DNA from: Dimorphilus gyrociliatus
Lineage: Eukaryota; Animalia; Annelida
Assembly (NCBI GenBank): GCA_904063045.1
Contig: CAJFCJ010000013.1
Span: 726,156-790,155 of the forward strand
Direction of reading: 5' to 3'
DNA: 64,000 nucleotides
The notes beneath the pieces were generated by a model, which was not told the DNA's origin, did no database searches, and saw only the letters and a program-made list of their open reading frames with translations. The translations under genes were made by a program, and so were the position numbers. Of this stretch, positions 1-6,077 are shown piece by piece (within the stretch, counting starts at the first letter, position 1; each line of letters opens with the position of its first letter).

Positions 1-1547
1 TTTTTCTTTTTATAGAGCAATTTCTGCCTACAACATGCAATGCTGTAGCAATACTTAACCTTCTTAGGATTTTACTTGTACATACTATTGTGTGCTGTTT
101 GAATGTAAATAAGTTTCTAATTAATGTATTAACTGTACTTAGCTGTGTATAACTTTTCTAGAACTTGCGAATTAGATATTTAACGGATTTAAATTTAAAA
201 ACAAATAACAAAAAAAACGAGTGAAAGCTAATAAATTTTACTTATTAGCTTTGACTGTCTGAAGCACACTTCTTAGGTCTTAGCTTCTGCAAATATGCTA
301 AACAGAAAAAGAATTGTACATACATTTGTTAATGTCATATGCACTAAAGTTAGATACCTCATTTTTACCTTATACTTTTAATTAATAATTTGAAATTAAG
401 TAAAGATTAGAGAAAATTAGAATAAGAAATCCATTGTCAAAAAAAAAAAACAAAAACACTAAAAAGATGAAAAGTATAATATTACATATTCATAGAAATC
501 TTGGAAAATAACTTAATTTGTTCTTTTCTTTTTATGTTTTGCTTCATAAAGATATTATTCATTTGTTATGTACCATAGATACTTCAAGTTAAAGAAATTA
601 TTCAGTTTTTAACCAGTATATCTGTGGTATATTTATTTTCAAAGTCTGTGATAGAGCGGTTTATTTTGTTATTAAAGATGTATCAGTTTAATCAAATGTA
701 TTCCAAAACCTGTATACTATTATACAATTTCATGCATACTAAAAACTTTGATCTGTTTTATGATTTCTTTTTGTTTGTTTGTTTGTTTATCAATCTATCA
801 AATCAAAATCTATCTCGTTATGAAGTGTAAAAAGTGAAAAAAGAGTGTTTTTATTTTTTTTCTTTTTTAGTGTCAAAGTATTCTTTTTTAACGATTCTGC
901 TTTGTTTATTCGTTCGCTAGCTAATCTGTTTATTTGTTTGTTTCCTTTTACTCTGCAAAGATGCTTTCAGTTCGGGCAAAAACCTTTGTTTTTTTTTTAT
1001 TTTTTGGATTCCTTTTTACTTCAAACTTATAACCGAAAGAAAATAATGCACACAAAACACAGTAATATATACACATAAAAAGGGAAGAAAAGCTATTTTC
1101 TTCCTTTTTTAAGTCAGAATACATGGTCATAAGCTAAAAATCTCTTATCTATCTTTAATGAAAGGTTTTAGCTATCTGAACTGGTTTATCGTTTCTCCAA
1201 AAAAAAAAAAAATAATGGTCAATAACCGTGTTTATTATCCACGTTTTATTCTTACTATGATTATTATTATTTTTATTATTATCTCTTTTTGTATATTGTG
1301 TGGGGGACAAGTAGAAATTTAGCAGTTCAACGTATTCCCTATGCCTTTAACTTTCAAATAAAGGAAATCTAGAATACGCAGCTTTGAAAAAGAAAATTAC
1401 TAAACGTTTATTATTTTTATTTAGCATTTAATATATTCAATAATACGAAAGTTGAATAGGTGAAACTATATACTATGGAATGTAAATCTCTGTTAATCAT
1501 TACGTGACGGATTGCGAATTGATTATATTTTGACAGCCTATATTTTC

Positions 1548-1556
1548 TGATGCAAT
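1548..1556 (+). promoter_or_regulatory. C/EBP-ATF composite element (CARE/AARE) TGATGCAAT upstream of PPP1R15
   Basis: Exact TGATGCAAT (reverse complement of the CHOP AARE core ATTGCATCA) about 200 bp before the uORFs. TATATAA at 1669-1675 and ETS-type CCGGAAGT at 1732-1739 also present. Confidence 0.6.
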
Positions 1557-1757
1557 TCCTCTGGACGGAACCTTTTTTTATATTATTACGACGAGGAATT
1601 TATTTATCTAATAAATTGACTATAATAACTTAAATAATTTTTTCCCAATTATTATAAATTATTAAATGTATATAATGGTCGAGTTTTCCCCATATTTTGC
1701 TGAATATAAGTTAGAACTATTTTTCGGAATTCCGGAAGTACGTCATAATAACCTTTC

Positions 1758-1778
1758 ATGAGTCATTTTCAAGAATGA
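1758..1778 (+). other. uORF1 (MSHFQE*) in the PPP1R15 leader
   Basis: ATG AGT CAT TTT CAA GAA TGA; its TGA overlaps the uORF2 ATG (ATGA, 1775-1778). TSS inferred near 1700 from the TATA-like element. Confidence 0.6.
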
Positions 1779-1972
1779 ACGTAGAAGGAAAAGGACATGT
1801 TACATTAAAATCATCTGATATGGCTTTGTTTGGTGAAGAAATAGCAAAATATATATTAGTTAATCCTGATTGTACAACAAATAAACCTTATTTTGAAGAA
1901 TTAATCGAAAAATTTGCCGAGGATCCTGATTTCGTCCAAAATCAAATACGTCATCAGCTTGGTTGGTTTTAA
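1775..1972 (+). CDS. uORF2, 65-aa peptide upstream of PPP1R15
   Basis: Uninterrupted ATG..TAA ORF with protein-like composition; stop is followed by one nt and then the PPP1R15 ATG (TAA-T-ATG). Confidence 0.6.
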   Translation: MNVEGKGHVTLKSSDMALFGEEIAKYILVNPDCTTNKPYFEELIEKFAEDPDFVQNQIRHQLGWF

Positions 1973-1973
1973 T

Positions 1974-2825
1974 ATGACTACATTTATAACGACTTTGTTT
2001 TCGAAGATGTCTTTTAATTCTGCCAATTCTTTGTTACCTATGAATTCAAAATCACGAAAGTTTCGGAGCTACGACAGACTCGATAGCTCGGGAATGGAAA
2101 TTGAAAATAAACATAAAAACGTATTGCGAAAAACAACTTCCGATTCAGGTGCCAGCTTTATCTCTTTTCAGCATGGTAATAGCGTTATGGCTAACAAAGC
2201 TCCTGAAAAATTACACAAATCATCCCTTCACCCATCAACATCCTGCCCATCGTTTACGTTGGTTTGTAACGTCAATGTGAACTCTTCTTCGCCCGATAGC
2301 GAAGACCCAGAAGTTGATACCCTGAATCATCAAAATATAACTTTCACCAAGAAAAAACGTAAAAAACGTCCCAGTAAACGAAAGAGATTAAAATTGAGAC
2401 TGACTAAACTGAGAGAAAATAGTATAAAAAAGTGTCCAACGAAAGATAAATTTTGTTCGGAAAGTATGAATAAACTTGTTCATGATTTTTGCGTCAGGGC
2501 TGGGGATGATTGCAACGATGACGAAGACTGGAGTGAATTTGAAGATGGCGAAGCCTTCGATGAATTAAACGATGACGATGACCTAGACAGTTCGGAATTT
2601 AATCAAATTCCAACTAAAACAAGAAGAGTTAGATTCCCCTCCGGTGATAAAATTCATGTTATCCACGAAATTGAAGATTTCAGTGACAAATTTAACTGGC
2701 ACTTTGTGGATAAACAACGTTTCAAAAATAGAATTGAGTCTTGTACTCCTATAATAAGTCCCTGTCTAGCTATTGAGCACAGGAGAAAAATGTATAAAAA
2801 GTTATTTGGTGCAGATTTAAAGTAA
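1974..2825 (+). CDS. PPP1R15: Protein phosphatase 1 regulatory subunit 15 (GADD34/CReP-like), intronless, 283 aa
   Basis: C-terminal RVxF motif (RRVRF) followed by W...DKQRFKNRI...ISPCLAIEHRRKMY, matching the GADD34/ICP34.5 eIF2alpha-PP1 module; acidic patch upstream. AATAAA at 2880-2885. Confidence 0.88.
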   Translation: MTTFITTLFSKMSFNSANSLLPMNSKSRKFRSYDRLDSSGMEIENKHKNVLRKTTSDSGASFISFQHGNSVMANKAPEKLHKSSLHPSTSCPSFTLVCNVNVNSSSPDSEDPEVDTLNHQNITFTKKKRKKRPSKRKRLKLRLTKLRENSIKKCPTKDKFCSESMNKLVHDFCVRAGDDCNDDEDWSEFEDGEAFDELNDDDDLDSSEFNQIPTKTRRVRFPSGDKIHVIHEIEDFSDKFNWHFVDKQRFKNRIESCTPIISPCLAIEHRRKMYKKLFGADLK

Positions 2826-2980
2826 AAGTTTTGTATTGTATTCTAACTTATTACTAATATTATTATTACTGCTATTATTAATAAAATTAATGTAAAAACG
2901 TTAACAGTTTTCTTGTTTCAAGATGAATCTATTATCTATTTTAAAAAAATTTATTGCTCTTTTGTTTTATCAGTGACTGT

Positions 2981-4726
2981 TCACGTTACGACAACGTGAT
3001 GTTCATTGGTGACACTTGGCGACTTAGTTAATTGGCGTTCTATTTTTCGAGCGGCCTCTCTTTTCTTTATCTTTTTCAACGTTGAAACGAGAAGTGGAAC
3101 CGATGCATTCATACTCAGACGACGCCACTTTTCTAAACATTTGACTGTTAGAATCTTGAATCCACCATCTAAACGCCTATTACTTAGGTCAATCACCTCT
3201 AGATCTTGTGATCTTGATCTATAATCTCTAGGCGGTGCGAATGGTAGCTTATGATAAAGCCAAACCCAATCTTTACCAACATCTTCCGATGCCAATTTAA
3301 ATGCCTCTTCCAATTCGTCCTTTTCGTGAGTCAGCATGCCTGGCGTGTATCCATAGTGATAGATCTTTTTTACTGTGTCCGAATGTAATTTTAATTCTCG
3401 AATACGCTTTAGGATGGTTACTCTATTAGAGTGTAATTGAATATCTGCGAGAACCAATTCCATATCCTGATTTTGTCTTTCTAACTGTCCAGCGGCTATT
3501 TCCTGAGATTTAAAAGCGGTATCTAGTTCTGATCTTAATCTTAAAATATCCCTATCAATTCTATCTTGTTCCGCTTGAAGAGTTGTTATTTGAGTATCAA
3601 TAACTTCACCTTTTCCGTCTAATCTTCTGATTTCATCTTTTAAATTTTCCGTTGTAGAAGATAAATAATTAAAAACTGTCGGCGAATTTTCTTTTCTCGT
3701 TTGCATTTTATGGCGACATTTCTCCAAATCTCTCCATTTATTATCCCTGTCGCGAGCCACATTATTCCTGTGTTCTCGAGCATCTAATTCCCTCCTCTTA
3801 AAGTAACGTTTCTCGTCCCTAGCTTCTGTTAGAAATCTCTCAACTTTAGACGCCTGCAGCGACTTCCTTTTCGATTTCAGCTCCAGACGATCTCGTTCAG
3901 CTTCAAGAGCTTTTAGGACATCTCTCAACTCCAATTTCTTTTTATTATACATGTTTATTTCTTGTTGAATTTTCCTCGTATAAGTCGCATCCGAGGTGAC
4001 CCATCTTTTCATTGGTTCGCAAACCCTTCTTAAGCGTTCGACTATTTCCTTCATTAGATCATAAACTCGATCATAGTTATTGATATATTTCGTAATGGGA
4101 CCAGGAGCACCATATGTATCCATCTCATCAAGTGTAGAATCGAGTTCTTGGAATCTTTCTCTTATATCACTATCCCATTGAGAAATTTTTCTTTCTTGTT
4201 CGTCTATAGGCTTTAGGTCATAGCCCTCTGCTTCTTGATAAAAGCTTAAACAGTAAGGTTTCAATTGGTGAGTGTAGGCGTCGTATAAGTCATTTTTCAG
4301 CGAAAAACTAATATATTCATATACCCTCCCCCTCTCGCACATAGTTCGTAATTGACCATACTCTTTTGTTTCAACCCTTGATTTTGATTGTAACGGTTCG
4401 AAGTCTTTATAGTCTTCTAACTCTGATAGTTTCTTTCCTGAATTTGATGCAATCTTCTCCATACTATCCAGCCATTTTTCGGTATCAGGCGGTGGCCCAC
4501 TTAAATATCTTTCCGAAAATATATGGCACTCCTTTTCAACATTATAAATAGCTCTCATTATCCTAGCTCGAACTACCTCCAGGGAAACAGGTATATATTC
4601 GGCCCTCCTCCGTCTACTTGTATTGGGAGAATCCAATGACGATGAGCTCATCTTGAATTTCGATCTGCGAATGAAGCGGCGATGAGTGAAAACAGAATTT
4701 AGTGATCGGCATTGTTTTGAATTCAT
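2981..4726 (-). CDS. Intronless coiled-coil protein with C-terminal death domain (581 aa; start may be 4651)
   Basis: Long ORF rich in E/K/R/L heptads; C-terminus FKLASEDVGKDWVWLYHKL...KCLEKWRR..ASVPLLVSTLKKIK..AARKIE fits the death-domain pattern. AATAAA on the minus strand at 2950-2955. Confidence 0.8.
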   Translation of the reverse strand: MNSKQCRSLNSVFTHRRFIRRSKFKMSSSSLDSPNTSRRRRAEYIPVSLEVVRARIMRAIYNVEKECHIFSERYLSGPPPDTEKWLDSMEKIASNSGKKLSELEDYKDFEPLQSKSRVETKEYGQLRTMCERGRVYEYISFSLKNDLYDAYTHQLKPYCLSFYQEAEGYDLKPIDEQERKISQWDSDIRERFQELDSTLDEMDTYGAPGPITKYINNYDRVYDLMKEIVERLRRVCEPMKRWVTSDATYTRKIQQEINMYNKKKLELRDVLKALEAERDRLELKSKRKSLQASKVERFLTEARDEKRYFKRRELDAREHRNNVARDRDNKWRDLEKCRHKMQTRKENSPTVFNYLSSTTENLKDEIRRLDGKGEVIDTQITTLQAEQDRIDRDILRLRSELDTAFKSQEIAAGQLERQNQDMELVLADIQLHSNRVTILKRIRELKLHSDTVKKIYHYGYTPGMLTHEKDELEEAFKLASEDVGKDWVWLYHKLPFAPPRDYRSRSQDLEVIDLSNRRLDGGFKILTVKCLEKWRRLSMNASVPLLVSTLKKIKKREAARKIERQLTKSPSVTNEHHVVVT

Positions 4727-4878: not shown

Positions 4879-6077
4879 CTATAAGGGCGTTTCATCGAAA
4901 CTGAATGAATCTTCATAAATGTTTTCTTCCGATTCAAAGACTTTAAATGGCCTTAAGAAAACGGCAGGTACTAATCCCTTTTGACCGTTGCAACTGACCA
5001 TCCACCACCCGTCGTTGCAAATATAATTGACTTTCACTATTACCCCTTTCTCAAAGCTTAGCTCGTCCTCTCGATTTTTGTTATAGTTTTCGATTGTGAT
5101 ACAAGTCAAATCCGTTATTATTGGATTGCTTTTGGAAGTACTGTCATAAGTCGGTTGTAAATAGGACGCGGGAACCCAAGCTGGTTTGTCGTCACTTTCA
5201 TCGATAATTTGAACAAGCCACCACCCATTACTACTTTTCTGTACCACATCTACTATCTGACCACACTTTAGGGTCTTCTCGTCTTTAGATTCCTTAGTAT
5301 AATCAGCTATTACTTCGTACGACGAACAATGAATTGGCGGCGATACGGACAAGTAAACACCGTCTCTATTATGTTGTCTACCATTTAAAAGCGATAGTAA
5401 ACTAAAAGACTTTTTTTTCTTTTGCAGAACTCTTTCTCCATTGAAAAACTTAAGGTCTTTGGCATTTATTGTGAAAAATTTTGATACTTGGTCGTTAATT
5501 TCTAAGAGTCTTAAATCCATTAGATTTTTAGAATATTTTTCCAACTTTTTACTTCTCTCTTCCGCAAACTTTCTTGTTTCCATTCTTCTAAATAATTTTT
5601 TACCTTTTAAGAAAAAAAAAACTATAAATTTTAAAGCCAGAGTGATTGATGTAAAAACAGTTTTTGTTCCATGAATAATTGAGAACGTTCTTTTTTGTAA
5701 CCTGGTAAGAATGGAAGTGTACGTTGTCCTTTTTTAGGGAAAAGCACTTTCAGATTTAACTGTATTATAGAAGAAAACGTGATTTTAAAAAGTTATTAAC
5801 GAACAGTATTTTTAATTTTATTTGAAGGAAATAAAAAGTTTTTAATAATATTACTTACGTGGAAATTTAAAAAGTCTTTATAAGTTCTGTAAACAACATA
5901 TTTTGTCTTATCCGACCAACCAATAGAGAACAAAAATATCTGTTGTTAATAAAAGAATTAATAAATTTTTACTTTAGCGAATTCATTGATCATAATAGGT
6001 CTTTTTACGTAGTGTTTCTTTGGCTCGTATTCTTTTTCGAATCCAACGGATGTGATATCTTCAATGAATCGACTCAT
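4879..6077 (-). CDS. NADPH oxidase organiser-like PX-SH3-SH3 protein (p47phox/NOXO1/TKS family); exons 6077-6009, 5939-5859, 5759-5702, 5603-4879
   Basis: Spliced frame MSRFIEDITSVGFEKEYEPKKHY/IFLFSIGWSDKTKYVVYRTYKDFLNFH/LNLKVLFPKKGQRTLPFLPG/KKLFRR...AEERSKKLEKY matches the PX domain; two SH3 domains (GWW..AWVPASYL; GWW..GLVPAVFL). All junctions GT-AG with consistent phase. Confidence 0.85.

Follow-up and report, generated by a model that had tools for sequence, protein, structure and literature searches.

The feedback loop of the integrated stress response is completed by PPP1R15, which directs PP1 to dephosphorylate eIF2α. To our knowledge, its control by upstream open reading frames (uORFs) has been studied in mammals and flies only. 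The 64,000-nucleotide stretch of Dimorphilus gyrociliatus DNA analysed here (the window; contig CAJFCJ010000013.1, on which window 1758 is record position 727,913, an offset of 726,155) adds a case from a spiralian, where the gene is compact and lacks introns, and in it a long uORF ends directly before the main start codon. The locus raises two questions: whether the peptide encoded by this uORF matters or only the act of translating it, and how ribosomes might reach a start codon that sits immediately behind its stop codon. We addressed both by comparing D. gyrociliatus with two relatives, one represented by sequence L003 and the other by L001/L002.

PPP1R15 proteins (GADD34, CReP, dPPP1R15) are recognized by an RVxF PP1-docking motif followed by a C-terminal functional core (Pfam PP1c_bdg). 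The main ORF encodes an RVRF motif that is invariant in the three taxa and matches PP1c_bdg weakly (E=0.005; its 17 bits fall short of the 26.1 gathering score). Profiles built on it matched named arthropod PPP1R15 or PP1c_bdg proteins (E=1e-6 to 5e-4) and the PPP1R15B structure chain 4v0u_E (E=0.002, over the final 38 residues). An exhaustive profile search of 1.84 billion proteins, for which the main ORF was the only query, returned arthropod PPP1R15 proteins alone beyond the two relatives. Although weak individually, these matches are concordant, and the main ORF is best described as a predicted PPP1R15 relative, in line with the earlier note on this DNA, which had named it PPP1R15. Its protein is 53–60% identical in amino acids across taxa, with values of 53–54% for the two relatives, compared with 76–87% for the proteins of neighbouring genes. 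Its dN/dS is 0.21, 0.13 and 0.10 between species, dS being saturated across the three taxa (1.4–2.3), and 0.18 against a variant that is 97.6% identical.

The geometry of the ORF chain is set out in the table. The earlier note had described two uORFs tiling the leader up to the PPP1R15 start, and its coordinates for both, for the main ORF and for the stop/start junctions proved exact. The stop codon of the first uORF (uORF1) overlaps the ATG of the second (uORF2) at 1775 in an ATGA, and the TAA-T-ATG at the other end of uORF2 recurs identically in L003 (617–623), while L001/L002 have TAA-TA-ATG. The uORF2 stop thus lies 1 nt from the first in-frame main ATG in two taxa, D. gyrociliatus and L003, and 2 nt from it in L001/L002; the frame offset between uORF2 and the main ORF changes from +1 to +2, yet the two remain adjacent. 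Fusion of uORF2 to PPP1R15 by frameshifting or readthrough was ruled out, since two taxa have an offset of +1 and the third one of +2.

Table. Features of the PPP1R15 locus and its upstream region (window coordinates).
Feature	Position	Strand	Details
Conserved upstream block TTACGTGAC	1500..1508	+	Identical in L003 amid diverged intergenic DNA
TGATGCAAT within conserved block TTTTCTGATGCAAT	1548..1556	+	Conserved in L003 at about 197–205
Conserved block TTCCGGAAGTACGTCAT	1730..1746	+	16/17 nt identical in L003 at 379–395; outside RNA contigs
uORF1 (as first described; doubtful as a uORF)	1758..1778	+	ATG 1758, TGA 1776–1778; peptide MSHFQE
uORF2	1775..1972	+	65 codons (ATG 1775) or 50 (ATG 1820); TAA 1970–1972
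Mini-uORF	1797..1808	+	Out of frame, 3 codons (ATG TTA CAT TAA); from ATG census
In-frame ATG, Met16 of uORF2	1820..1822	+	Strong conserved context: purine at −3, G at +4
Stop/start junction TAA-T-ATG	1970..1976	+	Single T at 1973, main ATG at 1974
Main ORF, predicted PPP1R15 homologue	1974..2825	+	283 aa, single exon; RVRF at residues 218–221
Conserved in-frame ATGs of main ORF	2007, 2040, 2094 (span 2007..2096)	+	Met12, Met23, Met41

Two further start codons lie within uORF2. The out-of-frame mini-uORF has an ATG and a TAA that are invariant in all three species (window 1797, L003 444, L002 12) around inner codons that vary, and its stop codon at 1808 is followed after 11 nt by the in-frame ATG 1820, whose context reads GATATGG, GATATGG and AATATGG in the three species. 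A gene call in one relative (P0004) begins at the equivalent of ATG 1820. In every transcription-start scenario considered here, the main ATG is directly preceded by a uORF that has 50 codons or more, counted from ATG 1820.

Open frames of this size are not expected at this base composition. A 61-codon frame with the composition of uORF2 was open in 0.4% of shuffles, a probability of just 0.004, since at 27% GC stop codons come up very often. The uORF2 sequences of the relatives have the same number of codons, no indels and the same stop position, and all three sequences were open together in 0/20,000 column shuffles. Given the substitutions observed, the frame would survive open in 1.2–2.3% of trials per lineage, and the two alternative frames over the same region each contain 4–10 stop codons. 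By these comparisons the frame is held open, at fixed length, by selection and its junction with the main ORF exceeds chance; a long uORF ending on the PPP1R15 start is accordingly a conserved and selected feature. Short ORFs are common, and the uORF2 peptide evolves neutrally (see below), so that a fortuitous ORF in an AT-rich 5′ region, devoid of any regulatory role, might be considered; given the low probability of an open frame, the equal length and shared end point in three taxa and the depletion of ATGs within uORF2, we attach hardly any credence to it. Selection for an open frame in three fairly close taxa suggests that uORF2 is translated.

The peptide presents a different picture. The earlier note had suggested a folded microprotein, possibly a conserved stalling peptide, and had proposed dN/dS as a check, a lack of purifying selection on the amino acids of uORF2 to count as refutation; such selection turned out to be absent. 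Its dN/dS is 0.98, 1.07 and 1.2 in the three species pairs and 0.97 in the 97.6%-identical variant (4 non-synonymous changes and 1 synonymous), so that neutrality holds at two evolutionary depths. Third codon positions are conserved to the same degree as first positions, and amino-acid identity across taxa is 38–39%. At the level of nucleotides there is constraint on codons 1–22 (dS 0.15–0.18). Homologue searches found little: a single-sequence word-index search of 5.8 billion proteins returned no relatives of uORF2, a profile used in the same search retrieved only the relative's own ORF, comparison with Pfam gave sub-threshold noise, the Atlas yielded no usable match and an exact look-up of the window peptide in gene calls was empty. 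The predicted fold is poor (mean pLDDT 62, pTM 0.38). If uORF2 encoded a working microprotein, or a nascent chain that stalled ribosomes as they terminate, this could account for the maintenance of the ORF, for its predicted helical propensity and for a loosely similar C terminus (…HQ.G/C-W/S-F) in which Gln61 and Phe65 are invariant, the Phe codon having undergone one synonymous change. Set against the neutral dN/dS, the equal conservation of codon positions, the low identity, the empty searches and the poor fold, these points leave such a peptide very improbable.

How much of the chain is present in the mRNA depends on where transcription begins. To call the region a leader presumes transcription from upstream of 1758, and uORF1, and perhaps ATG 1775, are putative parts of the mRNA. 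A metatranscriptome contig covers 1785–2785 with the flanking intergenic bins at zero depth; RNA contigs run continuously from about 1783/1785 through the main ORF, placing uORF2 from codon 3–5 onward on the same molecules as the CDS. RNA depth is zero over 1577–1773, and uORF1 lies outside every RNA contig. The 5′ ends of four RNA contigs, drawn from two taxa, correspond to window positions 1781/1783, 1785, about 1786 and about 1792, whereas the 3′ ends vary. Because these are assembled contigs, their ends are not transcription start sites (TSSs) and cannot fix the 5′ end; moreover, two of the four come from one study, in which a shared polymorphic branch could have ended both. Contigs L005 and L007 of a relative are DNA-like and uninformative on the TSS.

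The DNA around uORF1 resembles a promoter. The first 9 nt of uORF1 read ATGAGTCAT, a perfect AP-1/TRE-type palindrome; in L003 ATGAGTCATT is conserved, and the window has this one copy only. Since the ATG of uORF1 falls within this palindrome just upstream of the RNA contig starts, uORF1 may be promoter DNA, and in L003 its counterpart is a mere 3 codons long, ending 2 nt short of the uORF2 ATG. We therefore regard uORF1 as either a uORF or a promoter element, and as doubtful in the former role: the ORF-tiled leader of the earlier note stands as geometry, its first member less securely as a uORF. Further upstream, TTCCGGAAGTACGTCAT contains an ETS-like CCGGAAGT followed by a CRE half-site and is probably core promoter, and TTACGTGAC has the appearance of a bZIP/ACGT-core-like promoter footprint. 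TGATGCAAT, present in 3 copies in the window against 0.97 expected, matches what we take to be the C/EBP-ATF (CARE, ATF4-type) consensus and is a candidate site. Inr/DPE reasoning for placing the TSS was dropped, the spacing differing by 3 nt between the window and L003. An operon or trans-spliced dicistron was likewise rejected, operons and trans-splicing having been excluded for D. gyrociliatus by published data (PMC7854359).

We consider there to be nearly an even chance that the upstream end of the chain is promoter, with a TSS at about 1765–1785 that would leave uORF1, and possibly ATG 1775, outside the mRNA. The clustering of the four contig starts at 1781–1792 next to a region of zero depth, the position of the palindrome beside the conserved ETS-like and CRE-like motifs, and the invariance of the mini-uORF ATG and TAA and of the ATG 1820 context all argue in this direction. 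Pulling the other way, besides the caveats on contig ends, are the conservation of ATGAACG.AG around ATG 1775, the lack of stops in codons 1–15 in L003 as in the window, and, at about 1706, a conserved TATA-like ATAAG block that would put the TSS near 1738. With a TSS near 1765–1785, ATG 1820 is likely to be the principal uORF2 start, and the chain would read: mini-uORF at 1797, an 11-nt gap, a 50-codon uORF from 1820, a 1-nt gap and PPP1R15. This changes the anatomy of our preferred explanation, given below, and leaves its logic unaltered.

How, then, might ribosomes reach the main ATG? Classical delayed reinitiation there is disfavoured because of the zero gap after the uORF2 stop, and the exclusion of this route in the earlier note was reasonable. 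It had left two alternatives, leaky scanning and termination-reinitiation coupling. Over the 150 nt that separate ATG 1820 from the main start there is 1 ATG in total against 8.7 expected (P=0.003), a depletion that matters only if scanning subunits traverse uORF2 and that hence favours scanning. The depletion is not absolute, since L003 has one extra out-of-frame ATG within uORF2 (at 513) and a close variant has gained an in-frame one (I27M). In termination-reinitiation as the main route, ribosomes finishing uORF2 would remain on the mRNA and restart 1–2 nt downstream, or else at the in-frame ATGs located 33, 66 and 120 nt beyond that, tying PPP1R15 to uORF2 translation. The spacing of 1–2 nt, kept in three taxa despite the 1-nt insertion that shifted the frame offset, is what such a scheme itself predicts; the first four ATGs of the CDS are invariant and in frame in 3/3 species (the earliest out-of-frame ATG lying at CDS nucleotide 127–199); and UAAUAUG and UAAUAAUG resemble the UAAUG and AUGA junctions of viruses (PMC10275272).

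Known cases of termination-reinitiation after a long ORF need a TURBS-type tether (PMC10275272). Of the features that define one, the worm locus has the close stop and restart codons but lacks a UGGGA motif on a conserved stem: motif 1 (UGGGA, searched as TGGGA or GGGA) is absent from all three uORF2 sequences, and the RNA fold is no more stable than in shuffles (z=+0.98). The consensus structure is weak (−5.65 kcal/mol), its junction pairs are all invariant and show no covariation, and no conserved RNA structure or known RNA family was found. The ATG depletion would also be unexpected if elongating ribosomes alone crossed uORF2, and 50–65 codons is long for factor retention. On balance termination-reinitiation is unlikely as the main route, and the ATG depletion and missing TURBS lead us to lean towards scanning or bypass. 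A more specific proposal, that the junction is a cellular TURBS-independent termination-reinitiation site at which falling ternary complex shifts the restart from Met1 to Met12, Met23 and Met41, we rate as improbable. If true, eIF2α phosphorylation would change both the amount and the N-terminal isoform of PPP1R15, the isoforms differing by the presence of the hydrophobic first 11–22 residues. The conserved 1–2-nt spacing also offers a simple handle on the question of tether-free reinitiation after a long cellular uORF.

The explanation that we favour, and consider fairly probable, is that the PPP1R15 mRNA carries a long inhibitory uORF2 whose act of translation matters and whose peptide does not. 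It builds on the conserved geometry, the open frame of constant length free of peptide constraint, the ATG depletion and the continuity of RNA from about 1783 into the CDS. Scanning ribosomes would mostly initiate on uORF2, with ATG 1820 the best candidate, or ATG 1775 if it is transcribed. Having reached the TAA 1 nt before the main ATG, these ribosomes would mostly fail on PPP1R15 because there is no distance over which to regain initiator tRNA, and uORF2 would act in effect as an overlapping uORF. Production of PPP1R15 would then fall mainly to 40S subunits scanning across the uORF2 body, supplied by leaky scanning past the uORF starts or by resumed scanning after the 3-codon mini-uORF, and PPP1R15 output would in this way depend on ribosome load and eIF2 ternary complex. 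The same reasoning has been demonstrated for the 52-codon uORF of human PPP1R15B and modelled as interference between elongating and scanning ribosomes. Both the repression of the main ORF by uORF2 and any response to stress are predictions of this scheme.

On its best reading, uORF2 is thus a length-dependent, sequence-independent inhibitory uORF of the human PPP1R15B kind with an unusual, conserved zero-spacer end. If this ordinary reading holds, a known regulatory theme is extended to annelids, a result of moderate importance. Comparative data alone here separate an open frame, fixed length and few internal ATGs from the sequence of the peptide. Because this pattern of three constraints matches the predictions of length-dependent ribosome interference, the leader offers such models a clean natural test. 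The ICIER model has resistance appearing only above 20–30 codons, rising with length and requiring efficient initiation on the uORF (PMC6033536).

The closest known system is human PPP1R15B, whose leader has uORFs of 8 and 52 codons, the long one sufficing for resistance to eIF2 inhibition; the mechanism proposed is relieved obstruction of scanning ribosomes and not delayed reinitiation (Andreev et al. 2015, PMC4383229). Gene family and the pairing of a short with a long uORF are shared. However, the human uORF2 begins 21 nt after uORF1 and ends 75 nt before the CDS, whereas the worm's long uORF ends 1–2 nt before it and the short ORFs overlap it or lie 11 nt before its inner start. The uORFs of the two show no sequence similarity. 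ATF4 and GCN4 resemble the worm locus in belonging to the integrated stress response and in having a very short 5′ uORF (3 codons in the worm) followed by an inhibitory uORF of about 50–60 codons with no usable distance to the main start. In ATF4, however, the long uORF runs into the CDS, and enough spacer follows uORF1 for a choice dependent on ternary complex; such a timing step cannot work alike in D. gyrociliatus, where the spacer is either the overlap at ATG 1775 or the mere 11 nt before ATG 1820. With the viral TURBS of caliciviruses and influenza B (PMC10275272) the worm shares a stop and restart within a few nucleotides after a long ORF and a likeness of junctions. It differs in having no UGGGA motif 1, conserved stem or excess folding energy, and in being a cellular mRNA whose upstream product is unconserved. 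Drosophila PPP1R15, another invertebrate member with uORFs in its leader, is described as under uORF translational control (Malzer et al. 2013, as cited in PMC10743859 and PMC6070289), and the fly leader reportedly contains 7 uORFs. An unrelated, arthropod-like PPP1R15 RNA contig (L006) also has a 54-codon uORF, which overlaps and extends past the called start. A conserved, selected uORF before the worm gene fits the uORF control of PPP1R15 in mammals and flies to which the earlier note had appealed.

A read-through of window positions 1-4500 with a listing of ORFs showed that the earlier note, which described two chained uORFs leading into a PPP1R15-like gene, had all coordinates exactly right (Table). 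The locus matches GCA_904063045.1, contig CAJFCJ010000013.1, exactly (record position = window position + 726,155), and the deposited gene model is intronless and begins at ATG 1974. An operon or trans-spliced arrangement is excluded by published data on D. gyrociliatus, which has neither operons nor trans-splicing (PMC7854359); the arrangement is therefore a uORF leader.

Table. Features of the PPP1R15 leader and its surroundings (window positions)
Feature	Position	Strand	Description
uORF1	ATG 1758, TGA 1776-1778	+	6 codons, MSHFQE; TGA overlaps ATG 1775
uORF2	ATG 1775 to TAA 1970-1972	+	65 codons
Mini-uORF	1797-1808	+	3 codons, out of frame
Junction	1973	+	single T between uORF2 TAA and ATG 1974
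Main ORF	ATG 1974 to 2825	+	283 codons
Neighbouring gene 1	2981-4726	-	convergent; 581-aa coiled-coil protein, weak C-terminal Death-domain match
Neighbouring gene 2	4879-5583	-	PX/double-SH3

On sequence grounds the main ORF is a PPP1R15 relative, the single lines of evidence being weak yet concordant. Its RVRF motif is invariant in three orthologues, and its last 46 residues gave a sub-threshold match to Pfam PP1c_bdg (E=0.005). A three-orthologue profile matched the PPP1R15B chain of PDB 4v0u (E=0.002) and, among 1.84 billion representatives, 12 further proteins at E≤1e-3; the source-named proteins among the profile matches looked up were all arthropod, mostly labelled PPP1R15, PP1c_bdg domain-containing or DP71L-like. 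Two relatives are 53-54% identical to the main protein: B, on syntenic DNA-like contigs (L003, L005 and L007), and C, on two RNA-like contigs of 1.0-1.1 kb (L001 and L002). Both neighbouring genes are syntenic in B's 16-kb contig L005, their products being 87% and 76% identical to the counterparts there.

Every B and C contig carries an upstream ORF at the same place, which in B has exactly 65 codons and the TAA-T-ATG end of the window, and in C ends TAA-TA-ATG. In all three taxa the uORF2 stop directly precedes the earliest in-frame ATG (M-S/T-T…), the automatic gene calls of the relatives having started at the second or third. At the DNA level uORF2 aligned without any indel, and the upstream intergenic DNA is indel-rich. 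With its 1-nt insertion, C has uORF2 and the CDS offset by +2 instead of +1, which excludes their fusion by frameshifting or readthrough; the conserved property of the junction is proximity, not frame. The first four CDS ATGs (Met1, 12, 23 and 41; 1974-2096) share the reading frame and are invariant across the three taxa, the earliest out-of-frame ATG lying at CDS nucleotide 127-199, and could act as back-up or staged starts yielding N-terminally shortened isoforms.

Selection on uORF2 was assessed across these three fairly close taxa. A frame of its composition was open in 0.4% of shuffles, joint openness of all three sequences arose in 0 of 20,000 column shuffles that preserved relatedness, and scattering the observed substitutions at random left the frame open in 1.2-2.3% of trials, depending on the lineage; each of the two alternative frames is interrupted by 4-10 stops. 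Nei-Gojobori dN/dS for the three pairs was 0.98, 1.07 and 1.2 in uORF2 versus 0.21, 0.13 and 0.10 in the main ORF, and third codon positions of uORF2 are as conserved as first. A 97.6%-identical variant from marine metatranscriptomes differs at five uORF2 sites (I27M, Y39F, I44V, V54A and one synonymous; ratio 0.97), its main ORF showing 8 non-synonymous and 11 synonymous changes (ratio 0.18). Peptide identity among taxa is 38-39%, no homologue was found in word-index searches of 5.8 billion proteins, in Pfam or in the Atlas, and the AlphaFold model is helical and poor (pLDDT 62, pTM 0.38). These results speak against the proposed folded microprotein or conserved stalling peptide, and together with the openness statistics they indicate that selection acts on the frame and not on its product. 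Over codons 1-22, dS is only 0.15-0.18 versus 1.4-2.3 in the CDS, which points to constraint on the 5′ end of uORF2 as nucleic acid. The stretch between ATG 1820, from which uORF2 would have 50 codons, and the start codon of the main ORF is free of ATGs in all frames in the window and in C, and contains a single one in B, a total of 1 against 8.7 expected (P=0.003).

Where the mRNA begins decides which of these elements it contains. Metatranscriptome depth is zero at 1577-1773 and downstream of the gene, which argues that the PPP1R15 contigs come from RNA and not from contaminating DNA. One contig spans 1785-2785, a second 1783-1990 with two 5′ bases unaligned, and C's contigs start at the equivalents of ~1786 and 1792 with 3′ ends 88 nt apart; all are assembled contigs, whose ends are not TSSs. 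Two conserved blocks, both just upstream of these starts, are putative promoter elements. TTCCGGAAGTACGTCAT combines an ETS-like motif with a CRE half-site; ATGAGTCAT, with which 'uORF1' opens, is at the same time a perfect palindrome of AP-1/TRE type. Counting against a downstream TSS are the conservation in B of ATG 1775 and the sequence around it (ATGAACG.AG), and a TATA-like block near 1706, also conserved, with a predicted TSS near 1738. We give a TSS within 1776-1785 nearly even chances, regard one within 1759-1774 as tenable though doubtful, and consider one at or before 1757 unlikely. Of the proposed chain, the uORF2-CDS junction stands, and the presence of uORF1 in the mRNA is doubtful given the contig starts and the palindrome. 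Under either downstream placement the relevant elements would be the mini-uORF, whose ATG and TAA are invariant and inner codons variable in the three taxa, and ATG 1820, which has a strong, conserved context. Wherever among these positions the TSS lies, the PPP1R15 start is directly preceded by the end of a uORF of 50 codons or more. For D. gyrociliatus, CAGE data have been published (PMC7854359).

Further upstream, T-rich low-complexity stretches at 848-868 and 985-1005, where many metatranscriptome contigs join or end with variable inserts, look like repeat or cross-organism matching, not splicing. Two conserved putative promoter footprints, TTACGTGAC and TTTTCTGATGCAAT (1500-1556; L003 ~147-205), precede the uORFs by 220-275 nt. 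TTTTCTGATGCAAT includes TGATGCAAT, the C/EBP-ATF (ATF4-type CARE) consensus and a candidate binding site. GADD34 is a transcriptional ISR target, and the conserved CARE consensus suggests that the annelid gene may be one too.

The closest known case is human PPP1R15B, whose leader pairs an 8-codon with a 52-codon uORF; the latter suffices by itself for resistance to eIF2 inhibition, and this resistance was ascribed to eased obstruction of scanning ribosomes, not delayed reinitiation (PMC4383229). In the ICIER model, resistance sets in only once a uORF exceeds 20-30 codons, strengthens as the uORF lengthens and depends on its efficient initiation (PMC6033536). Because the annelid leader combines what the human account requires (a frame kept open at a fixed length by selection, a peptide free to vary, a predicted efficient start codon and few internal ATGs), we favour scanning obstruction. 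uORF2 is thus probably a capture device: most ribosomes would be captured by it and released at the main ATG without efficient restart, and PPP1R15 would be made by subunits that leaked past its start(s), or resumed after the mini-uORF, and scanned across its body. Stress, by lowering ribosome load, would raise the yield of scanning subunits at the main ATG. Termination-reinitiation, which the conserved 1-2-nt stop-start spacing and the run of invariant in-frame ATGs after the stop would suit, is a live but improbable rival, since in known cases restarting after a long ORF depends on a tether (PMC10275272) and this leader has no counterpart: it gave no Rfam match and lacks the UGGGA motif of the viral-type TURBS tether. 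Its fold is not more stable than shuffles (z=+0.98), and the consensus fold is weak, with invariant pairs at the junction. In all three sequences RNAalifold predicts pairing between CAUGUU around the mini-uORF start (1796-1801) and AAUAUG at the junction (1970-1976), ~175 nt away; the energy is weak and, with every pair invariant, the pairing shows no covariation.

Control of PPP1R15 by uORFs is already known in mammals (PMC4383229) and, as cited in PMC10743859 and PMC6070289, in Drosophila. An unrelated PPP1R15 RNA contig (L006, run SRR2006804), for which the profile search gives arthropod proteins as the nearest named relatives, has a 54-codon out-of-frame uORF (76-240) that runs 50 nt past the start of the called CDS (191-1015). 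New relative to these systems are a spiralian instance of a PPP1R15 uORF leader, a conserved zero-spacer uORF end, and purely comparative evidence for selection on uORF length and openness rather than on its peptide.
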